From assembly GCF_052425735.1 (NCBI RefSeq), contig NC_135771.1, forward strand, positions 21,142,001 through 21,206,000: 64,000 nt of DNA, given 5' to 3'. This DNA comes from Oculina patagonica. Taxonomy: Eukaryota. This document shows, in pieces, positions 1-50,180 of the stretch. Under the pieces are notes generated by a model. The model worked only from the letters and a program-made list of their open reading frames with translations. It did not search any database and had not been told where the DNA came from. The translations under genes were made by a program, and so were the position numbers. How positions within the stretch are numbered: position 1 is the first letter of the stretch; each line of letters opens with the position of its first letter.

Positions 1-118
1 CAGGAGTCGTTGAACAAGTCTTTTCTTTTGACGGGAACATACATCTCCAGCAACACTGAAGTTATATTACCGTCTTGTAGAGCTTTTATCATTGAGTTTA
101 AATCAGGGAACGTGGATC
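1..118 (-). CDS. Exon 39 (partial): S2 lobe, type II periplasmic-binding-protein-like
   Basis: [39 protein letters not shown]; open to window edge. Confidence 0.88.
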
Positions 119-3100
119 CTGCAGGAATGAAGGTCAAGTCACGTGCTATGGTGATAGAATGCGCACTGCGTTGAAACAATTATTTCTACAGAATTCGCGT
201 TTATCAATAAGAATATGACTAATCCTCCACTCACCGATTTCTATCTTGTTTCGGAATTTTTTAACCGCCATCTGGTGTTCAGAAGAGTTAGCGACCACTG
301 CAATCTATAAGGAAAGTAAACTTATCATATTCTGCTCAACAAAACTGTCTCGTAAATAGTTATTTATGAAAATCAGGGGTTTCAAAATGTTTTGAAGTAG
401 ACGTCAGCAACTTGAGGTGTGGGCGGCTGTGACAATGCTGAGCTTGTTTGCCACAATGCAAGCTGATTACTATGAAAGAGTAAGCCTTCTCGCAGTCTCG
501 ATTTCTTTTGCAGGGCTAAAAAGGTCTCGGACTCGCAGAAAAAAAAAAACAGTCTCACCGTCTCGCAAAGTCTCGCATTTACCATTCGCCACCCCCTATA
601 TAATCAAGTAGCCGGCTAAACTCAGGCAGTTGCCGAGCTTGTCTCGTTTTCTCTGTTGAATACAATACAATACAATACAATACTTTAATTTGACACTCCC
701 CTTACGGGGCTTTTCAGTGACAATAAATTACAATAGAAATAACAATTTTAAAATTATAAAATTACAATGGTAAACATTACAATGATAAAACATTACAATG
801 ATAAAAATTTGGATAAAATGAATTACTCCTAATTAATCTATGTTAAAAACTCCTCCATTAATTTTGAATGACATGACAACACTAAATTAGCTCTGGTATG
901 CATGTTTTTGTCAGACAAGCTACTTTCACCTCGAAGCCTCGCTTTGAAAGTGCAGTTTGAAAATTTTGTCATGAACTATTTCCAAGAGCAGCAAAGATAA
1001 AAAGAATACGAAAGTAAAAACAGTATGAATATGCGAGAGGTTTGAGGATGAATTTGAGCCACAAACGTAATCATGCATAATGTCCATAATACCTTGCTGT
1101 CAGCAGCACCTGTGGGACTCACACCATTTGAATTCATTGAAATGACTGTAACAGTGAGCACTGATGCCAATGATCCCATGAAGATAGCGAAAATAACGAG
1201 TCCAATAAGAAACCAGGCCATTGCAAATATCTTGGCTGGCATGGATTTTGGACAGCGATCACCGTACCTGTGTAAAAAATAAATTCCTTTTTCCCATGTT
1301 TAACAATTGCTGATTGCTGATACAGTTTGCAACATGTAAGAGCTGATAACTTTTTAGAAGCAGCGAACTCCCATTGTAATGATCAACGAGTCAATTTTCT
1401 AAAGTAAAGTAAAGTAAAGTAAGCGACTTTGAACGGCTAAAAACAGACTCAAAACAGACGTGTATTCATTGTGCATGGCCGTTCAGCTCCATTATCTGAG
1501 AATTACTGGTGTCAGGTTTCATCGACTCTCCATATAAAGGCGGACACCTCTCTAAGACGGACAGTTAGGGCAGGTCCCGAAAGTGTCCGTCTTAGAGAGA
1601 GTTGACTATATTAACCAATATAGTGAGGCTGCCAACACATATAGTTACGCTCTACAGGAAGTCACTTTTTTTCTGTCATCAGTACATAACATATATATCC
1701 TGCGATGTACGCAGTATGCCATAGGTGGGAGTGTGCTTACTAAAGACTTGTCCTACAACGCTGCACAACAACAACGAAATGTGATTTTTTTGGTTTACAA
1801 TTTGCTAAATACTAAAACAATAATCCTGCTTAATCTTGCAGAGTATCTTCTGATTTGAGCGAACTCGGTATACGGCCTCGTCAGCTAGGGTTAGCTAGGT
1901 ATCAGGCGATATTCTGCTCGATTTTGCAGGATGTTTGTCACAAGAAGGCAACAAAACCCGAGCCAACTACCAGAAACTGACAACGAACAGTATGAAGAAG
2001 ACATTTGGGACCGTCCAAGGGCACTCGCTTAAAAGATGTAGATTATTTCGTTTATTACTGCAAGGAGGTGGTAATTCTGGATCCGTTCTGTAATTTTAAC
2101 TCACCCCACTGTGGAAAAGGTAATAACAGACCACCAGAGGCCTTCACCAACTCCCTTGAAAAACGTTCGGGGGAAATGTTCCTGATTGGTTCTGGAGTCC
2201 TGCGAGGCAAGAAAAAATAACTTCAGTTATGCACCGACAATAAGCCAATAGAGTAATACAGTCCATTGAATTTGATCGCCCACATGGGTCACTTTCACTA
2301 CTCAAAATTATATACAACCTTTTCACCTTCCGAGACAAACCTCAAAAATCAGTGCAGTTTTAAGAGAATAAGACCATTCAAATGAAAGCTGTTGAGCAAT
2401 ACTTTTCGGTGGCTAGTGGTGGATATCTGATTCACCTCGCCGCTTCGTGGCTCGGTAAATATCCACCACTAGCCACCTCTACTTTGGTAAAGTTGTTAAT
2501 TATACTGTACAAACTGGCACCTTTCAAGTCTTTAGAAGAAACTCCCACGTATAACCATTCAAATGAAAGCTTTTTAGCAGTACATTCATGTGGTTTTGTT
2601 AATTATGCTGTACAAGGGTGTTTTATAGCTTATAGGTAGGAGTATAGATTCCTAGTGTACGTATGCCCATTCAAATTCATGTTATTTAGTAGTACGTTTA
2701 GAAGAAATGATTGTCTTAAATTTGGCACGACTTGGAATGCAAGTCAGTCAATCAATCAATACAATCTTTATTCAGTGATCAGAATGCACGCTTAGCTAAA
2801 AAGCTAGTTAGCAGGTGCGTACACCATGAAATAAAAATACAAAAAGAAAAAGAAAACTTCTTTGGAAGTGAATAAATTAAGTTAAGCTATAATATACATG
2901 AATCATACAGTAATCGTATTAGCTCACCAGAATCCAAATGATAATTCCCGCTAGAAGAGCTGTTACCAATGTGAGAACGAAAATTGGCCAAAACTCAAAA
3001 ATGGAGTTTGCCATAACTTTTGTTAGCAAACCGCTATCAGTGCTTTTCTTCTGAATAACCACAATACCAGGGACAGTTATAACCGGAATGAACTTGCTGT

Positions 3101-6100
3101 ACTCCGTGTCACCATAGGCCTGGGTCTTGATTACTGGAAAGGACACATGGTCTCCCTTGGAGCTGCTGTAGGAGACTAACTTCGTGTCATTGTGTTCTTC
3201 ACATGTCCCGCACGTGGTGGTCACAAGGTCACTGATGATACTTGTGAGCGAGTTAAATCCTGATGATTCTAATGGACTTTGAACTACGGAGACACTTAAA
3301 TGCTCCGTGCATCGACAAGTTTCTGAGAAGAATTCAAATTGTCGTTAGTTAGAAAGCAAGAAACTGAAGACAATGGAAAATAAATTATTTAATTAAGATA
3401 TAACTGTTAAAACACAATTAGATTTTATTCCATATGTCCTTTAAATACTAGAGCATTTCTTTTTTTGGTAAATCATAACTGCTGACCTATCTCACCCTTC
3501 AGCGCTAACCCTGGCTTTGAACTGGTCACGATCTTCCTGAACTCTCATTTGAATTTTTTTAGAGCCGGCGTTTCCAAAGTAAAGGCCCTAGCGAATATCT
3601 CTATTGTCATTTGAATACACGTGCAAATAATTTTTAATCACGTTTTTGTTAATTATTGGTCTTGCGAACAGTTCGTGGTTGCCTTTTACGACTATTTTTT
3701 CGTCTAGTGTGCATTTTAGGACGTTCGCGCTAATTTTTTATGCGCATCCCTACTGCGCACGTATTTCATGTCGCAACGCCATGCCACGTCATACTTTGAG
3801 CGCACGCGCTGAGTAAAATTTCTAAAAACATTTAGGTTGGGTTGCCGTTCCGCTTGCTTCGTTTGCAATTTGCTCTCTTAAATGGTCGGTGACCCCTACT
3901 TTTTTCTTAACGGATCACTTTTGTTAATCAGTATCTACGTTTTGCGAGAAAATGAAAAAAATCTATCGAGTGGAAGTTGATTTTGTTGACACACTGACGG
4001 TTTGAATTCTGCTTTTTGAGTTTTCCTTTTTGCCGTACGACAGTTTTAAATACGTTTCTTCTGGGTTTGGTTTTTACCAAAAAGATGGCAAAACTAGGAA
4101 TTATTTACGAAGAGACGCACTTCTACAAAATGTGACTAAGATCGTTAGCCTTCGTTTACTCATCTTCGATATATTTAACTTTAAACCCTGTAAACCATAC
4201 TGAATTACGTGCGCCAATTTTTCAAAATCAGGGTAGTTTTCCACACGCTTTCTCACTGAAACGAAGTCGGTGACCCCAACTTTTTTTGCATTTCTGACAC
4301 AAGTAACTCATTATCTTGCCGCAGTAAAAAATTAAAAAATCTATCGAGTCAGCTTTTAGACAACTTGTCCGTCTAGACGACAAAATCGTCTTCCTGGAGG
4401 GCCAAATCAACGGACAAAAACAGACGACTTTTAGGCCCAAAATCGTGTTCGTCCCGCTTTCACACTACGACGACTTGTCCGTCTCAGATGATTTGTTGGT
4501 CTTCTAGTGTGGAAGCGGCCAATGAGTTTTGATGCAAGGAGCTAGATACATAGATATTATATATTTTTTTTCATAATAGTTAATACCTCCATATACAGGT
4601 TCACTAAAGTTTCCTATCCCGTCAGTTGTTAGAACTGCCACTTGAATCTTGTACATTGTGTAAGAAATCAGATTGGTGAGAAGTATTTCATTTACATCAG
4701 CACAAACTATCGCCGTATAATTTGGCTCAGCAAGTAAGTCCACGATTGGTTCACCTCCGATACGGACGGCTTGATACTTTATGTAAAAACCACCCAAATC
4801 TCCACTCAATCTTTCTTTTGTTCCATGTTCCCAAGTGACCTTAATTGCGGATAAACTCATAGCGGTTGTAGCAGCTGTTTTAGGTGAACTGGTGTCGGGA
4901 GCTGAAAGAAAACAAACGTTACCCATAAATTGGATAACTCTGAACATCAAATAACACAACCCATCCTTACGACATCAAACAGGAGCTCGATAACGAACCG
5001 ACCTTTTCTTTCTCTCAAGCGGAAAGGCTATGTTGATGAAACATGACAGAGAATTATTTAAAACAATAAACGAAACGCATGTCATAGAGCTTCCTGCCTT
5101 TCCTTATAGTACATCCAACTGCTACTGTACTTAAACATATTTTTCCATCAATGTTGTGTCCAAACGGTAATGGACTGGGTGGAAGAGGAACTCAGAGGTA
5201 AGCATATTTGCTAATTTTTAATTCTGCGACTGATTTCTTGATAGGCTACTTGATAGGAGTTCAGTAACCAAGCAGACATACAGATATTTTTGTACCATAA
5301 AACCTCAAAGCAGGATTTACGAATTTTCGAGCAATTGAGCAAATTTTATCGGAATCCGAGCATGCGAGCAACTGCGATTATTTGCGAGCACGAGCTAGCG
5401 AACACTCGTCCAAATTTTGCGAGCAAATCGAGCAAAAGCCAAATTTTTGCGAGCATATTAATGGGGTCTTCAATATTTTAAGGGAAAATTTGATACCCCT
5501 TATATTCCTGATTAAGACATAATAAGGGAAGGCAGTTTTGCCAAATGCAAACAATAATAATATTATTGATACCCTTACTCTGACTAATGACCATTAGCAT
5601 AACCACACTGACCTACTATTGGTAATCGCGCGATCTGATTGGCTACACAGGTGCCTACTATCGATCCGTAGAAGGCTCTCGGAGCGCGCGCGTAGTCTTC
5701 GCTGAATTTTATCAATCAAAACCTTCAATAAATCAATTCTAGCGATATTCTGAGTTTAATAGATCGGTCAGTGGGTTATGCTAACACAATTAGACGGCTC
5801 GCTCTCGGTTTCTACCGGCTTTTGATAGTTGGCTCGGGGCTTCGCCCCTCGCCAACTATCAGCCGGTAGAAACCTCGAGCTTGCCGTCTAATTGTTAAAG
5901 AGAAGACAAAAGCTGAACTCACCAAAATTAATTTTTGTACAATTAGTCAGTGGACCAATCCCATTTTTGTTAATAACAGCCATTTGAATACACGTGTCAC
6001 TCGACAAGTTTATATTCTTTAGCTCGATTGACGAAAAACACGGAGCTACAAACCAGACACCATCAGATCCATTTACAAGCACTGCGTATCCTACAAGCTC

Positions 6101-9100
6101 TCCATTAACATCACCCTCGGGGACTGGGTCCCAGGATAAAATAACAGTGCTGTAATCAGGGCTGAACGCTGAGATGTTGGTAGGAACCGCTGATGGTACT
6201 GCAGATTCAAGGGATTAACACCGTTTGGTATAACAAGAAGTCATTTTCGATCGCCAACACCTTTACAATACCATTTTTTGAAAAAAAAGAATACTTTTCT
6301 CAGAGAACATTAAACTGCTTGAAGCAAAAATTAAAAAAAAAAAAGACAAAAGAATATAGAATAGTACTTACACAAAAGTGCAAGGATGCTTAGAATGAAA
6401 TTGAATTAATGTAAATGGCTTGCGAACTCTAAGATTGATTTTTGCTCCGTCAAAACAAGAATTAAAGTGTTAAAATTACGTTTAGCAAAAAAATATCAGT
6501 GACTTTGATTGCAATTAAAATTATTAGAGTTTGTGCTCACGAGCTAGATTTATGTTGTTTTAATTATTTTTTCCTACCAATCACCACTAACTTGCTTATT
6601 ATCAAATATTTTTATCTTTCATGTTTTTACCGCATTCATCGGTCATCGCGGTCGTGCAGCGACCATAGGACCCAGTCCCGTAACTGCTGACTGCCTGCAC
6701 GGACAAACAGTACTCAGTACAAGCATCCAAGCCTGTCAACACAACTGTCACAGTTCCTGGAGGAAACGCCTTTGTTTGGTATGACGGAATCGTTTCGTTT
6801 TTCCAGAAACGAACATTGTACCCAGTAATTTCATACGCGGCATAGTATGATTGCGGAGGAGTGAAACTAAACTGTATGGAAGTTCCGTTAACGCTAGGTG
6901 CGTCGTGAATTTTGGGTGCTCTTGTTGGCGCTGAAAAGATAATAACGGCAAAGCATTAAATTAGTTATTAATAAATAGGAATAAATGAATCTCGTATATA
7001 AAACCAGCAGGGCGTGGTCTTGGTTGAAAAATAAACTTACAATTGTTTTTTTTTACATCACACACTTACGCACAAACACACAGGGAAGCAAAACAATTAA
7101 ATAAGTCAAGTATTATTATACTGGACAAGAACATTGCTGTTGAGATACTGTCTTTTGAGACAGACAAGTCACTCGTCCTTTCAGAAGGTATGCCAAATAC
7201 AAAGGACGAATTTTTGTAACTTGATATAACATGCTTAAGAATTTTAACTGGCAGGACACGGTTGCTGAATGGACGAAACATAGCCCAAGAACTCGGGCAT
7301 TAGCTTGCTAAGTAAAAACATAAAACAGAAATAATTAAACGTTCACAGTAATAGGTTCCCGGTAGGGGGGGGGGGGGTACACAAAAAAGTTTTCTACGGG
7401 GAGGCTTCGCCCCGAGCTCTAACCCCTTACCCTTTTATATACCATTTTGACAGAAATTGTACCCCGTTCGTATACCTTTTGCTGAAAAAAGGTACCCCTT
7501 TCATATACCTGAAAGACATGGCAAAGACTTAAAAACACGACGTTTTCTTGTCATTTTCATGTAGCGCTAAAGAAAGGTTAAGTTACACATTACTGACGTG
7601 GAAATGGTTTTGCTGGTATGCCATAGATCTCCAGTCTCATGCAGGGTGACAGATGCCATTCTTTCGGGTAAAACCGAACAAACTGCGCCACTACATCGCC
7701 GTTTAAGTAATTCCTCTTTGCACGATGGTAGTTACCAGCAGTATAAAATTTCTGTGAAACAATAACCAACGAATTAACAGTTTATATAACAAGAACCGGT
7801 AAATATACTGCCTTAATGTACATGTATAACATGATACATTTGTATACCGTTTATGTATCAATGCTTGTGATCAGACCCTTTTCATTAAAATTAAGGTTGT
7901 GGTCATTTTAAGTATTAACACGCAAATTCCCCATGCCGCAGGAAACTCCTTGCTACCCGGGGGGGGGGGCACTTCCTATAAATGGGCTAATGGGGATGTG
8001 CCGCTGGATGGGGTCGCATTTTCACGACTGGACTGACTATAATGGGGTCGCCATTTCAAGCATTTTTTATAGGGTGACTAGAATGGGGTCACACTTTCCG
8101 GGATTTTGAGAGTACGAAAATCTGGCAAGTTGTGATTTATGAACGGAAATATTCGCCGAAAAAAATGTTACCGTATTTATTGCTGTTGTTCAATATTTGA
8201 CAAACAGCTCCCAGAAAGTGACTAAGTTGGGGTCGTAAAAATTAAATTTACCCAAAAGTGACTAAGATGGGGTCTATAATTGGCCATAGAATAAGACTAT
8301 AATGGGGTATGGGTTCTGAGAGGCCAGCGGCACATACCGAACAAAAATTTACCCAAGTACCCCCCCCCCGGGCTTGCTACCTCTCTAAGGCATTTATTGA
8401 TAGCGAATTTTCTACTTCTGCCATCAACTTTCTCCAGGGCAGTTGTGACTGAACGTCCTTAACACTATTTCCGTTAAAAAGAACGTTATAAAACACAACG
8501 TTAACGTGTTATTTTAATCATAAGATTATACCCTCTCGAACTCTGTCCAATGTGTTCCATTCAGTGATAAATGGATGGCGAAACGTGTCACGTGACTTCC
8601 ATCTACGTGACCTTGTGTCGCTACTGCTATCACGTGGTAAGGAATACCAAGGTCAACTTGAAGAAAAGGATTGGTTAAGTTCAGTGGGCACCAGGCCACG
8701 TGCGAGCCCAGCCGAGCAGCCGCTGGAGGATTGGATTCTATGTATGACGATGCTGATATGTTGATGTCTGGCATGGCACCAGTTTCCAGTCCCAGGGCTT
8801 TTTCCCAGCAATAAGCGTCGTTACGGTAAAACCCTGATAGATAATATAAAAAGACTAAAATTAGTCATGATAATTCATTCAAAAACAGTAGGTGAATGCA
8901 GTCCATATAACCTTAAACCCACTATTAAGAGGGGATTTTCAGGAAAGGAGGATTTACTTGTCAATCAGCAGGTAACGGCGTAAAATTTATCGTCTTTGAG
9001 GTCAGGATATATAGTATTATCAATTTACAACTGTGACAGTTTAATTTACATGTTATCGAAGACCTGGAAGAGAAAGTTTGAAATATTGTTAGGCTTATGC

Positions 9101-12100
9101 AGTGGACTTAAATTTCGAAAAAATACAAAAAGGTCGCTAAAGCTCTAGAAACAACGTGCAAGTTTAAAATGCTGATCAGATGGTGTCGTTCAGATTATAT
9201 TTCTCCCAATTGCAAGTAAAAACATTATGCGCAATCGAATGTCGAGAAACGCCGACACTCTTTTATAGTATTTGATTACCACTTTTCAACTAAAACTAGA
9301 TGACCGAACTACACAAATTTTTGAGTTGATTAGCTTTGAGTTAGAACTTCAGAGCGGTGACTGAAAGAATTTCTTTAAAAAAAACTAATGGCATTGGCCA
9401 AGAGAGGATTACTTTGGTAGAAAAGGAATTACGAAAGCATATGCGGATAAAATCAAATTAACCCCTCCCTTTCAAAAAAAGACCTTCATGACCGTCATAC
9501 CTTTTCTCTTGCAGATGTAAGGTAAAGATTGTAAACAGTTTACAACATTCCAGTGACCTTGCACACTTGCACTCTTCGCCACACAAGCAATTCCATTTGG
9601 AATACCCTCTGTCGGGTTTTCGTACCAGTTAGTATAATCAAGATAATGCCCGTTACTCCAGTTCGGAAATCTTTTCAAGTTATTCTCATCTTCTATGAGC
9701 CCAATAAACACCTCGTTAATTGTGGACCTGATCATTTCTGAGTCAATAAACGCTTCTTCCTCGACGTTTAGTATATACAGTAGGTCTGCGTTTCGGTTCA
9801 AGCAGTCAATTTCGGCGTTGTACCAGTTAAGAGGATTCTCTTCAAGGATCAGGTAACAATTCGTTTGGAAGAAAATCCATCCCGGCAGACAGTCTTAAAA
9901 ACAAATATTAAACACAAATAAACATTTGATATTTGAAGTACATGACTATGATACTTCTTTTCTACTTACAACAAAATGCTTTACTATAACCGATTATATA
10001 GGTCCGATTATCCAGTAATTTAAGATCAATGGTTGATGTTTTTAAGGTAACCAAAAGTCATAATTGTTTACGGACTGAACGAAANNNNNNNNNNNNNNNN
10101 NNNNNNNNNNNNNNNNNNNNNNNNNNNNNNNNNNNNNNNNNNNNNNNNNNNNNNNNNNNNNNNNNNNNNNNNNNNNNNNNNNNNNNNNNNNNNNNNNNNN
10201 NNNNNNNNNNNNNNNNNNNNNNNNNNNNNNNNNAGGTATTTAGCTTTAAAAAACTAATTGGGGACATTATTTACATTAAAATCTACTAAGCTACATAAAG
10301 TTAAAAATATTTACACTTAAATTCTAAGAAAAAAAACCGTACTACATAGATGAATAGATAAATAAATGAATAAATAAAAAAATGAGAATAAAATATAAAA
10401 TTTTATAATAAAAGTAGGTATGAGTGACTGGACGTAACACTATATAACAATTGCCCTGCATTAAACCTGTGTTGCGGAAAAAGATAAAATACTCAATTAA
10501 GTTGGTAGCCGGCAGCAGCAGAGGACCATTGTGGAGGACCCGGGCTGCCACTTTGGGCACCTAGTATAGGGGAAGGTAATTCGTAGTCAAAAATAGTTGA
10601 GAAAGTTAAAGAAAAACGTCGATCAAAGGAACAATCAGGAATATATAGAGACTTTTTAAAAGAACTATTACTAACACCAAAAGTGATACATAATATTAAT
10701 TTACATGGAGTTACTTTGACAAGCTACATGCATATAGCATTAAAGAATACGTTTCACTTTTAGAGGAAATCATACTGTCAAGCTTGCACCGTTGGGAGTC
10801 TAGAAAATACTGCAACTTCGGTTTGATTGGTTAAAATAGATAATGACTGCAGTAAATATGCATCCTTACAGATCTTCCGTCTTCCGTTCGTGTTTTTTTT
10901 TAAAAGTATAGCCTTACCTGGAGATGTCGTTACTTTAGTGCAGTTGTTGTGTTCAACATCGCCAAGTTCATTGTAAATGAGAATTTTGACACAATACGTG
11001 CTATTTCTCTCCAAGCCAGCGACTGTGTAATTTGTAGTATTTCTTTCAACTGTTATCGTAACTTTAGTTTCATCAAGTACTCCTTGTTCTGTGATGCGTT
11101 GGTAAATTATTTTATACCCAGTCAGTTCTATAGCTGACTGACAAGGCAGGCTGTCCCAAGAGATCTCGAAGGAGTGGCTTCCGATGTTGTGTACTTTGAT
11201 GTCAGTAATTACAGGTGGCCATACTGAAGAACAACAATAATATCATATTAAAGGAAAACAGCTGCATGAAATAAACGTGAATTTCGGTTTTTCCCTCCTT
11301 GAGTTATATCACAACTACACCTAAAAAGATCGGATTCCCACACGGCAATCATGTAAAGCTGTTGTAATTAGTTTTAGTTTTTTTCTTAAGCTTAACTAAC
11401 TGAAATTAACTGACTAGCAGGATCGATTTTTTTGGCTGTTCTAAACATAGTAGCCATGAAATATGCTAAAAAACTTTTTTAGTTTTAATATTTTTATTCT
11501 GAATGTTTATTCTAACTTTTTAACATTTTTCAGTATTGCCTAATCGTCTTACCTTTGGGCATTTCACAAATGAAAGCTCTAATGCTGTTTTCACTAAGAT
11601 CGTTCAATAGGCCTTGTGTATTCTGCGGAATATCCTTTGACATCACCGTCACATTTCCGTTACCAGATGGCTGCCCACCTTGCCATTTACTGATCGTCAG
11701 TGGTCGTCCGTTCACCCACGTCCAATTCGCCCCGATTTTTGTCAAACCTATGTGCCATTCGCGGGGTTTCGCAATGCAACGTTTTTGAATCTCTTCATTG
11801 ATAAACTGCCATTCTTTCTCTGTTTCCATGGTTACTAGGTCGCCTCGTTTACCTTTGCAGGTATCTCGGTTCTCGTTCCATGTTTTGCCTGACTCCGTAA
11901 ATGAGTAGCAGGAATCCCCAAATAATACATTTCCGCTTTCTATAAAAAGAACAGAAGGATTTAACTCCATGTAAGCAGCAACGTCAATGAAGCGCCAGTA
12001 AAGCTCATGGAAAATTAAAAGTACAATTGCCGGTAGTAAATTCTATAGGAGTCTAATGGCACAGAAATGCCGGAGTGCAACCTGGTTTTTGTGGCATAAA

Positions 12101-47460: not shown

Positions 47461-50180
47461 CGTGAGGGAACTCAAAATACAACGGCGAAGTTGAAACATG
47501 AGGCAACCAAAATGAAACGGCGAAGTTAACACATAAAGAAATTCAAAATGAATCGGAGAAGATAAAACATGAGGCAACTCAAAATATAATGAACCGGAAA
47601 AGTTCAAACACGAGGGAACTCAAAATGAAACGGCGCTTTAAAACATAAAGAAATTCAAAATGAATCGGAGAAGATATATAAAACATGAGGCAACTCAAAA
47701 TGAACCGGAGAAGTTTAAACACGAGGGAACTCAAAATACAACGCCGAACTCAAAATTAAACGCCGAACTCAAAATTAAACGTAGAAGTTAAAATACGAGG
47801 GAACACAAAATAAAAAGCAGAAGTTAAAACAGGAGGGAACTCAAAATTAAACGCACAAGTTAAAACATGAGGAAACTCAAAATCAAACGGAGATGTTAAA
47901 ATATGAAGGAACTCAAAATTAAAAGCAGAAGTTAAAACAGGAGGGAACTCAAAATTAAACGCAGAAGTTTAAAAAAGAGGGAACTCAAAATGAAACACAA
48001 AAGTTAAAACAAGCGGGAACTCAAAATGAAACGAAGAAATTAAAACAGGAGGGAACTCAAAGTGAAACGCAGAAGTTAAAACAAGAGGGATCTAAAAATG
48101 AAACACAGAAGTTAAAACTGAGGGAACTCAAAATGAAACGAAGAAATTAAAACAGGAGGGAACTCAAAGTGAAACGCAGAAGTTAAAACAAGAGGGAACT
48201 AAACATGAAACACAGAAGTTAAAACTGAGGGAACTCAAAATGAAACGAAGACATAAAAACAGGAGGGAACTCAAAGTGAAACGCAGAAGTTAAAACTGAG
48301 GGAACTCAAAATGAAACGAAGTTAAAACAAGAGGGAACTCAAAATGAAAAGGCGAAGTTTAAACACGGGGATAGGGGGGGACAACCGGGAACTCAAAATG
48401 AAAAGGCGAAGTTAAAACCGACAACCGGAAATTCAAAATGAAACGGAGAAGTTGAAACCGTGAGGGAACTCAAAATGAAACGAAGAAGTTGAAACCGTGA
48501 GGGAACTCAAAATGAAACGGAGAAGTTAAAACATGAGGGAACTCAAAATCAAACGGAGAAGTTAAAACATAAGGTAACTCAAAATCAAACGGCAAAGGGA
48601 ACTCAAAATGAAACGGAAAAAATTAAAACTCAAGGGGGCTCAAAATGAAACGCAGAAGCTAAAACAAGAGGAAACTCAAATTGAAACGGAAAGTTAAAAC
48701 ATGAGGGAACTCAAAATAAAACGGCAAAGTTAAAACACGAGGGAGCTTGAAATTCCGGAAACGGCAAAGTTAATACATACATTGTAAGGGAACTCAAAAT
48801 GAAACGGCAAAGTTAAAACATAAGGCAGCTCAAAATGAAACGCAGATGTTAAAACAAGTGGGAGCTCAAAATGAAAAGGCGAGGTCAAAACATGAGGGAA
48901 CTCCAAATGAAACGGAGAATCTAAAACATGAGGGAACTCAAAATGAAACGGCAAAGTAAAAACATGAGGAAACTCAAAATAAAACGCGAAAGTTAAAACA
49001 TGAGGAAGCTCAAAATGAAACGCAGAAGCCTAAAACAATAGGGAACTCAAAATGAAACGGAAGTTAAAACATGAGGGAACTCAAAATGAAACGGAGAATC
49101 TAAAACATGAGGGAACTCAAAATGAAACGGAGAATCTAAAACATAAGGGAACTCAAAATGAAACGCAGAAGTTAAAACATGAGGGAACTCAAAATGAAAC
49201 GGAGAATCTAAAACATAAGGGAACTCAAAATGAAACGCACAAGTTAAAACAAGTGGGAACCCAAAATGAAACGGAGAAGTTAAAACATGAGTAAAACATA
49301 AGGAAACTCAAAATGAAACGGAGAAATTAAAACATAAGGGAACTCAAAATGAAACGCAGAAGTTAAAACAAGAGGGAACTCAAAATGAAACGCAGAAGTT
49401 AAAACAAGATGGAACTGAAAATGAAAAGGCGAAGTTAAAACAAGAGGGAACTCAAAATGAAACGCACAAGTTAAAACATGAGGGAACTCAAAATGAAACG
49501 GAGAATCTAAAACATGAGGGAACTCAAAATGAAACGGAGAATCTAAAACATAAGGGAACTCAAAATGAAACGCAGAAGTTAAAACATGAGGGAACTCAAA
49601 ATGAAACGGAGAATCTAAAACATAAGGGAACTAAAAATGAAACGCACAAGTTAAAACAAGAGGGAACTCAAAATGAAACGCAGAAGTTAAAACAAGATGG
49701 AACTGAAAATGAAAAGGCGAAGTTAAAACAAGAGGGAACCCAAAATGAAACGGAGAAGTTAAAACATGAGTAAAACATAAGGAAACTCAAAATGAAACGG
49801 AGAAATTAAAATCACTTTGCCAAACATGAGGGAGCTTAAAATGAAACGCAGAAGTAAAATCAAGAGGGAACTCACGCAGAAGTTAAAACAAGTGGGGGCT
49901 TAAAATGAAACGCAGACGTTAAAACAGGAGAGAACTCAAATTGAAATGGAGAAATTAAAACATGAGGGAGCTTAAAATGAAACTTCGAAGTTAAAACATG
50001 AGAGAGCTCAAAATGAAACGGAGAAGTGAAAAAACGCCATGGAACTTAAAATGAAACGGAGAAATTAAAACATGAGAGAACTCAAAATGAAACGGAGCAA
50101 TTAAAACGTAAGGGAACTTAAAATGAAACGCAAAAGGGAAAACAAAAGAGAACTGAAAATAAAACGGAGGAATTAAAACC
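47461..50180. repeat. 36-bp minisatellite (~75 units; consensus CATGAGGGAACTCAAAATGAAACGGAGAAGTTAAAA), remnant units to 51140
   Basis: Tandem periodicity directly visible; translates as 12-aa repeats. Confidence 0.97.

Follow-up and report, generated by a model that had tools for sequence, protein, structure and literature searches.

The 64,000-nt stretch of the Oculina patagonica genome analysed here (assembly GCF_052425735.1, contig NC_135771.1, positions 21,142,001 to 21,206,000; hereafter the window, with coordinates counted from its first letter) holds the 3´ end of a very large gene on the minus strand. When spliced, the exons at this end encode a channel core in the order S1, first transmembrane helix (M1), pore (P), second transmembrane helix (M2) and S2, the split-clamshell architecture of the ionotropic glutamate receptors (iGluRs). 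A third transmembrane helix (TM3) after S2 and a cytoplasmic tail, as is characteristic of eukaryotic iGluRs, are encoded by two exons of L003 outside the window, found by tblastn with C-termini of the family described below; the corresponding helix occupies residues 377-412 of a proxy structural model. Our subject is the exon at 2928-3322, which a sequence-only reading of the window had described as a shortened S1 lobe without the arginine that binds the ligand carboxylate. The peptide quoted in that reading is encoded exactly there, the 131 amino acids (aa) of the exon being read from 2928-3320 on the minus strand.

The exon is transcribed and spliced as modelled, without an internal splice. 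Its acceptor is the AG at 3322/3323 (phase 1) and its donor the GT at 2927/2928. In RNA-derived contigs from three public runs belonging to three studies, three exons of the core were covered and the unique intron sequence was not. Joints in these contigs, at 2198>2927 and 1265>2103, each have GT..AG ends on the minus strand, and contigs of 2.0 and 3.5 kb extend singly into upstream exons. The TVG|YGD selectivity filter, which is split by an intron, is joined in the RNA contigs. Because the contigs show the exon to be unspliced internally, the shortness of S1 is not due to a hidden splice.

Some further features of the RNA data were noted. Two intronic segments, 1537-1627 and 2356-2628, had contig depths of hundreds to ~15,000, compared with 10-100 on exons, and are probably expressed or very abundant repeats. 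One contig from run X2 (organism B) has a joint at 1266>2111, entering the pore exon eight bases further in, with seven unmatched letters between the two parts and 15 differences in the M2 exon; this contig probably derives from an ortholog or paralog that has diverged, and not from alternative splicing. A run of polyA raw reads (X23) gave five reads, all at repeats, and was uninformative on strand and expression level.

Searching 1.8 billion representative proteins with the exon returned 158 homologs at E<=1e-3, mostly exon-sized fragments along with several full-length proteins. (A homolog search with the whole-core alignment was dominated by K+ channel words, with 16 matches, while a search restricted to S2 succeeded.) Named members come from Nematostella, Oculina, Stylophora, Exaiptasia, Rhopilema, Hydra, Hydractinia, Porites, Pocillopora, Acropora, Xenia and Dendronephthya and are annotated as uncharacterised or potassium-channel-domain proteins; no paper on this cnidarian family was found in the literature searched. 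The layout S1-M1-P(T-V/L-G-Y-G-D)-M2-S2-TM3-tail was seen in every full-length member. The part N-terminal to S1 varies by member and consists of a signal peptide alone or of FN3, discoidin, MAM, EGF, CUB/Ig or TSP1 arrays.

Evidence that S1 and S2 are the two halves of a clamshell, as the sequence-only reading had proposed, comes from profile and structure comparisons. Pfam Lig_chan matches the M2 exon and all of the aligned members (58/58). An hmmsearch of PDB sequences with the family profile hit only K+ channel pores (E down to 2e-16), with no match to a ligand-binding domain (LBD), and the S1 exon alone gave no Pfam match to SBP_bac_3 (PF00497) or Lig_chan-Glu_bd (PF10613). At E<=0.1, one or the other of these two domains was detected in 0/54 animal members versus 4/4 bacterial controls. 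With hhalign, the family core matched bacterial GluR0-like proteins at a probability of 99.95-100 (E 3e-38 to 5e-49), the match spanning S1, the membrane domain and S2 and the bacterial partners carrying Pfam SBP_bac_3 and Lig_chan-Glu_bd. For a structural proxy we used residues 18-450 of the family member P0041, modelled with AlphaFold2 (AF2) from a 58-row alignment at a predicted local distance difference test (pLDDT) score of 86 overall and 91-97 across S1. In Foldseek this model matched LBD plus transmembrane chains of AMPA and NMDA receptors over ~430 columns (E 5e-13). Its best VIA-align matches were the GluR0 cores 2pyy and 1iiw (Z 19.5, root-mean-square deviation 2.9 Å), the superposition covering 204-211 of 212-221 residues; periplasmic amino-acid binding proteins, AvGluR1, plant GLR3.4 and animal iGluR LBDs ranked below. 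We conclude that this cnidarian channel family has a genuine bilobed clamshell of the GluR0/iGluR type, of which the exon supplies the S1 half, and that this clamshell, as judged by its sequence, is very divergent.

The S1 lobe encoded in the window is indeed short. Between the beta-1 anchor and the P-G turn that precedes the last S1 strand it measures 79 aa; over the same interval four bacterial GluR0-like proteins measure 86-87 aa, and the family members P0041, P0058 and P0152 measure 94-107 aa. In the family alignment as well as in the global hhalign alignment, the window protein has a gap where others have the helix C segment, which lies at residues 73-79 of the proxy model. The spacing from the CxxC motif to the F-P pair is 19-26 (median 22) in the 33 closest cluster representatives, the median elsewhere in the family being 39, and the short spacing is common to the paralogs L008-L013 of the same genome. 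The helix C segment is thus deleted across the whole clade to which the window gene belongs (hereafter the clade). In the proxy model, helix D is absent between the F-P pair and the F-x-P motif, and in an AF2 model of the window S1 and M1 exon a helix (helix A) was predicted at residues 25-37.

The cysteines that the sequence-only reading regarded as extra (CRC and CGTC) are present, but they are not special to this gene. The C-x-C and C-G-x-C motifs to which they belong are invariant or nearly so family-wide, making them a hallmark of the family rather than a private trait, and they presumably form structural disulfides. As a separate observation, the conserved extracellular cysteines of the clade number four in S1 and zero in S2, and the clade lacks the cysteine found in most other family members within the helix that follows the last S2 strand (A1 columns 401-420).

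The threonine two residues after a conserved proline in GluA2 (T480) contacts the alpha-carboxylate of the ligand, which is bound as well by the arginine that begins helix D (R485). Arg485 and the acidic residue at position 705 are the accepted pair that fixes the ligand backbone in iGluRs (PMC6307864). In the extracellular S1 of the window protein, the sole arginine is that of CRC. There is none from F61-P62 to the S-K-F-I-P strand, a point on which the sequence-only reading was right, and the only basic residues in this interval are K65 (P+3, counted from P62) and K76. The segment P-V-I-K-T-Q-A-Y stands in the place of the canonical P-x-T-x-T-x-x-R. Two paralogs from the same genome, both of which keep the acidic Asp of S2, still have an arginine: L010 reads P-V-T-A-T-S-V-R and L013 reads P-I-G-V-T-S-I-R, and the spacing in L010 equals that of GluA2 P478/T480/T482/R485 and of the bacterial A-L-T-I-T-x-E-R. 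From the arginine spacing in L010 and L013 we therefore set P62=P478, I64=T480, T66=T482 and Y69=R485. In this register the equivalent of T480 is Ile64 (3129-3131) and that of R485 is Tyr69 (3114-3116), such that the threonine is lost along with the arginine that had been reported missing.

Comparison across the clade showed F61, P62 and V63 to be almost invariant and position 66 to be T or S in 25/33 sequences. Position 64, Ile in the window protein, is T or S in 18/31. At position 69, where the window protein has Tyr, the clade has Arg in 9/33 sequences, Gly in 11/33 and Phe in 6/33; family-wide, an arginine is found at P+7 in 21/155 sequences. In the nearest orthologs, which come from other assemblies and are 53-76% identical, position 69 is F, F, I or Y and the loop that follows retains G-D-T. 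Because these orthologs are aromatic or aliphatic at position 69 and share G-D-T, the replacement is itself conserved. No Arg or Lys was found at P+4 to P+13 of the window protein under any alignment tried, and the absence of the arginine is for this reason robust to uncertainty in the register. Read from its sequence, the window gene lacks both of the side chains expected to hold the carboxylate, the equivalents of Thr and Arg, and canonical binding of an alpha-amino acid by its product appears unlikely.

Table 1. Features of the 3´ end of the channel gene in the window.
Feature	Position	Strand	Evidence
Ectodomain exons with Pfam F5/8-type-C (discoidin) and fn3 matches	~4500-8900	-	Pfam
Exon for S1, pre-M1 helix and M1	2928..3322	-	Open reading frame, splice sites, RNA contig joints, exon-only depth, homologs
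C-x-C (C2, C4), ectodomain/S1 junction	3309..3317	-	Family conservation
C-G-x-C (C37, C40), end of helix A	3201..3212	-	Invariant in clade, 30/30
Eight-residue linker Y51-H58 joining strands 2 and 3; site of the helix C deletion relative to other members and bacterial GluR0-like proteins	3147..3170	-	Alignment gaps, spacing statistics, helix C of proxy
F61-P62-V-I64-K65-T66-Q-A-Y69, counterpart of P-x-T-x-T-x-x-R	3114..3140	-	Clade alignment, paralogs L010 and L013
G-D-T-E-Y loop after the lost Arg position, acidic and aromatic	3099..3113	-	Kept in nearest orthologs, variable across clade
M1 transmembrane helix, W111-L131	2928..2990	-	AF2 helix 111-130, pLDDT >90
M1-pore linker, pore helix and first half of filter (..TFSTVG); 95 nt	2105..2199	-	RNA joints
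YGD (completes TVGYGD) and M2; 175 nt	1093..1267	-	Pfam Lig_chan and Ion_trans_2, RNA joints
First S2 exon: strand and start of helix; Ser-Ser pair at 281-286	235..304	-	
Second S2 exon, extends 162 nt beyond window start	1..118	-	Acidic residue aligned by hhalign

Both of the S2 strings quoted by the sequence-only reading are present, IAVVANSSE at 278-304 and the second at 45-83. N-S-S-E is present where the alignment places the beginning of helix F, whose hydroxyl residues in GluA2 are S654/T655, with a register uncertain by one residue. The equivalent of GluA2 E705 is the Glu at 45-47 in V-L-L-E-M-Y, which hhalign aligned to an invariant bacterial Asp; at this position at least 90% of the family have D, and the acid is kept in all paralogs examined. 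The retained acid on the amine side, together with the putative helix-F serines, argues for a pocket that has been retuned rather than one that is dead. On balance we lean towards a clamshell that has lost its carboxylate pair, is retuned to a non-canonical small ligand and still gates a K+ pore. The suggestion in the sequence-only reading that the channel may not be gated by amino acids can be kept insofar as canonical recognition is unlikely, with the qualification that Lys65 is a possible substitute contact.

In the mechanism that we propose, the upper lobe would have been remodelled in the window gene and its three recent duplicates, with helix C gone, Ile64 in place of Thr and Tyr69 in place of Arg. 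In the lower lobe, the helix-F serines and the acidic contact to the alpha-amine would remain. We infer that the cleft may have been retuned to another small ligand, perhaps of a cationic or amine type, a guess prompted by the acidic and aromatic replacement loop and by the retained amine-binding Glu. Closure of the cleft would still pull on M2, opening a K+-selective, hyperpolarising pore.

Several observations weigh against this reading. Full-core hhalign runs placed the bacterial arginine at P+5 or P+8/9, not at P+7; local confidence in this placement was low, and these runs were not used to fix the register. An hhalign comparison of the clade S1 alone with bacterial S1 was not significant (probability 1.5%). 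The register rests on motif spacing, the paralogs and the proxy model rather than on a structure of the window protein, and the proxy, P0041, belongs to a different subfamily and is ~38% identical to the window protein in S1. The AF2 model of the window S1 exon itself was poor, with pLDDT of 45-51 over residues 51-95, and the S1-only model is consequently uninformative on helix D. No electrophysiology for any member of the family was found in the literature searched. Finally, Lys65 lies near the lost site in the sequence, four residues before the arginine position.

This last point leads to the possibility that binding of an amino acid or other carboxylate is kept through a substitute charge, supplied by Lys65, by Lys76 or by the K-R-K stretch that follows the S2 acid; the gene would then encode a K+ channel gated by amino acids in the manner of GluR0, but with its contact moved to another residue. 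K or R is found at position 65 in 19/33 clade sequences, and members with Arg at position 69 are mostly non-basic at 65, hinting at an either/or arrangement; the retained alpha-amine acid and putative helix-F serines fit such a channel as well, and a register uncertainty of ~3 residues allows room for it. However, conservation is lacking at position 65, where many members have L, A, V or M, and with Ile64 the second carboxylate contact is lost too. In the register P62=P478, residue 65 corresponds to GluA2 I481, whose side chain we take to point away from the ligand, which also counts against relocation of the charge. We rejected the either/or pattern at positions 65 and 69 as a sign of charge relocation, given that it could reflect one or two evolutionary events and that K and R are common in such loops. 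Taken together, we consider a substitute charge to be unlikely.

We also considered that the clamshell may bind no ligand, serving as a mechanical or allosteric coupler between ectodomain and pore or as a non-binding heteromer partner of paralogs with a canonical pocket. The sequence-only reading had raised a related role, in which force or binding at the ectodomain would be passed on by the clamshell. The giant adhesion-type ectodomain is joined straight to S1 through a conserved E-T-C-x-C junction, and residues 64-74 form a loop that differs among members of the clade. Moreover, canonical and non-canonical paralogs occur in one genome, reminiscent of the co-receptor and tuning subunits of ionotropic receptors (IRs) and NMDA receptors. 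On the other hand, family members of ~500 aa that have no ectodomain carry an Arg-less clamshell of the same kind, and the ectodomain is therefore not needed to explain the loss of the arginine. The presence of the S2 acid in at least 90% of the family and the conservation of the replacement loop in the nearest orthologs suggest that the pocket is still under selection. A ligand-free clamshell is thus rather unlikely, and we return to a retuned pocket as the reading we favour.

The channel end of the gene is present as four recent segmental duplicates on C14, at 20.54, 20.85, 21.14 (the window) and 21.62 Mb (loci L002, L005, L006 and L007), one of which is inverted. The four copies are 95-100% identical in S1 at the amino acid level and 90-98% identical in their introns. 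With copies this similar, the odd S1 might be that of a young duplicate drifting towards a pseudogene, and there are few substitutions from which to measure selection. Nevertheless, all four copies have open frames, and the ratio of nonsynonymous to synonymous changes per site (pN/pS) in the exon is 0.10-0.30, on few substitutions. Spliced transcripts were recovered in three independent runs, and orthologs from other assemblies, at identities of 53-76%, likewise have a short S1 and an aromatic side chain at position 69. Given the open frames, the pN/pS values, the spliced transcripts and the conserved orthologs, we regard decay as very improbable.

A cluster of short-S1 paralogs (L008-L013 and L034-L036) was observed elsewhere on C14, at 2.31-2.44 Mb. 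Within it, L010/L034 have the full P-x-T-x-T-x-x-R and the S2 Asp, and L013/L035 have T-x-x-R and the S2 Asp. By their motifs, these four loci are the best candidates in this genome for members that bind amino acids. Two further features of the window were also noted. A 36-bp minisatellite at 47463-50179 (~74 copies, 74-76% matches) is a strong outlier in AT/GC skew; since its period equals 12 codons, it may be either a low-complexity repeat in the coding sequence of the ectodomain or an array within an intron. At 10085-10233 there are 149 N in a row, an assembly gap or masked sequence.

Cnidarians stand at the base of nervous-system evolution, and the family links bacterial GluR0-type channels with the glutamate receptors of animals. 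The coexistence of paralogs with the intact set of contacts and paralogs with the amine half only may make ligand diversification in the family open to concrete tests, in a situation that resembles the divergence by which IRs arose from iGluRs. Paralogs of the L010 and L013 type would be the first choice for trials with amino acids, and the window type calls for a wider range of ligands. A more specific prediction is that subunits of the window type, with the aromatic and acidic loop Y-G-D-T-E-Y in place of the carboxylate-binding Thr/Arg and with the amine-binding Glu kept, form hyperpolarising K+ channels that recognise cationic or decarboxylated ligands (biogenic amines, polyamines or quaternary ammonium compounds, for example) and represent a new cnidarian class of inhibitory ionotropic receptors; this is quite unlikely to hold in full. 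If true, it would describe an amine-type receptor carried on a giant adhesion-type ectodomain and diversifying beside paralogs that still bind amino acids.

Among known systems, GluR0, the prokaryotic K+-selective glutamate receptor of Synechocystis and Nostoc (1IIW, 2PYY), is the closest in core layout, with the same order S1-M1-P-M2-S2, a TVGYGD-type filter and a conserved acidic contact to the alpha-amine, and the proxy LBD is most similar to the GluR0 cores. Unlike GluR0, the window gene is interrupted by introns and adds to the core a giant discoidin/FN3 ectodomain, a third transmembrane helix and a cytoplasmic tail, and its S1 is without helix C and without the Thr and Arg; it does not conform to the minimal GluR0-type subunit, which has no ectodomain and no transmembrane helix after S2. 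AvGluR1 of the rotifer Adineta vaga likewise combines animal iGluR architecture with a K+-channel-like filter, and its LBD (4IO2) matched the proxy model with Z 17.3. AvGluR1 is the known animal iGluR whose filter bears a K+ selectivity signature (Janovjak 2011 and Lomash 2013, cited in PMC12226733), and it binds glutamate and hydrophobic amino acids through a canonical backbone-binding site (PMC12226733). The window gene differs in having no such site, as well as in ectodomain and lineage. The class II bilobed fold is also that of periplasmic SBP_bac_3 proteins, among them LAO, ArtJ and GlnH (Z 16-18 against the proxy), but these are soluble, keep helices C and D and the arginine, and are not interrupted by a channel.

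The IRs of insects and other protostomes are a parallel in evolutionary mode: many have lost the backbone-binding residues of the LBD and have a cleft retuned to ligands that are not amino acids, and they form large, tandemly duplicated and fast-diverging families with variable pocket loops (see PMC2924276). They differ in being cation channels without a K+ filter that derive from AKDF-type iGluRs, and the analogy is one of evolutionary mode only. Backbone-binding residues are lost in 28/122 newly described metazoan iGluRs (PMC6307864), and their loss is thus already known from other branches of the iGluRs. What is new in the cnidarian family is that canonical paralogs and paralogs without the carboxylate site coexist in one genome and that helix C has been lost throughout a clade.

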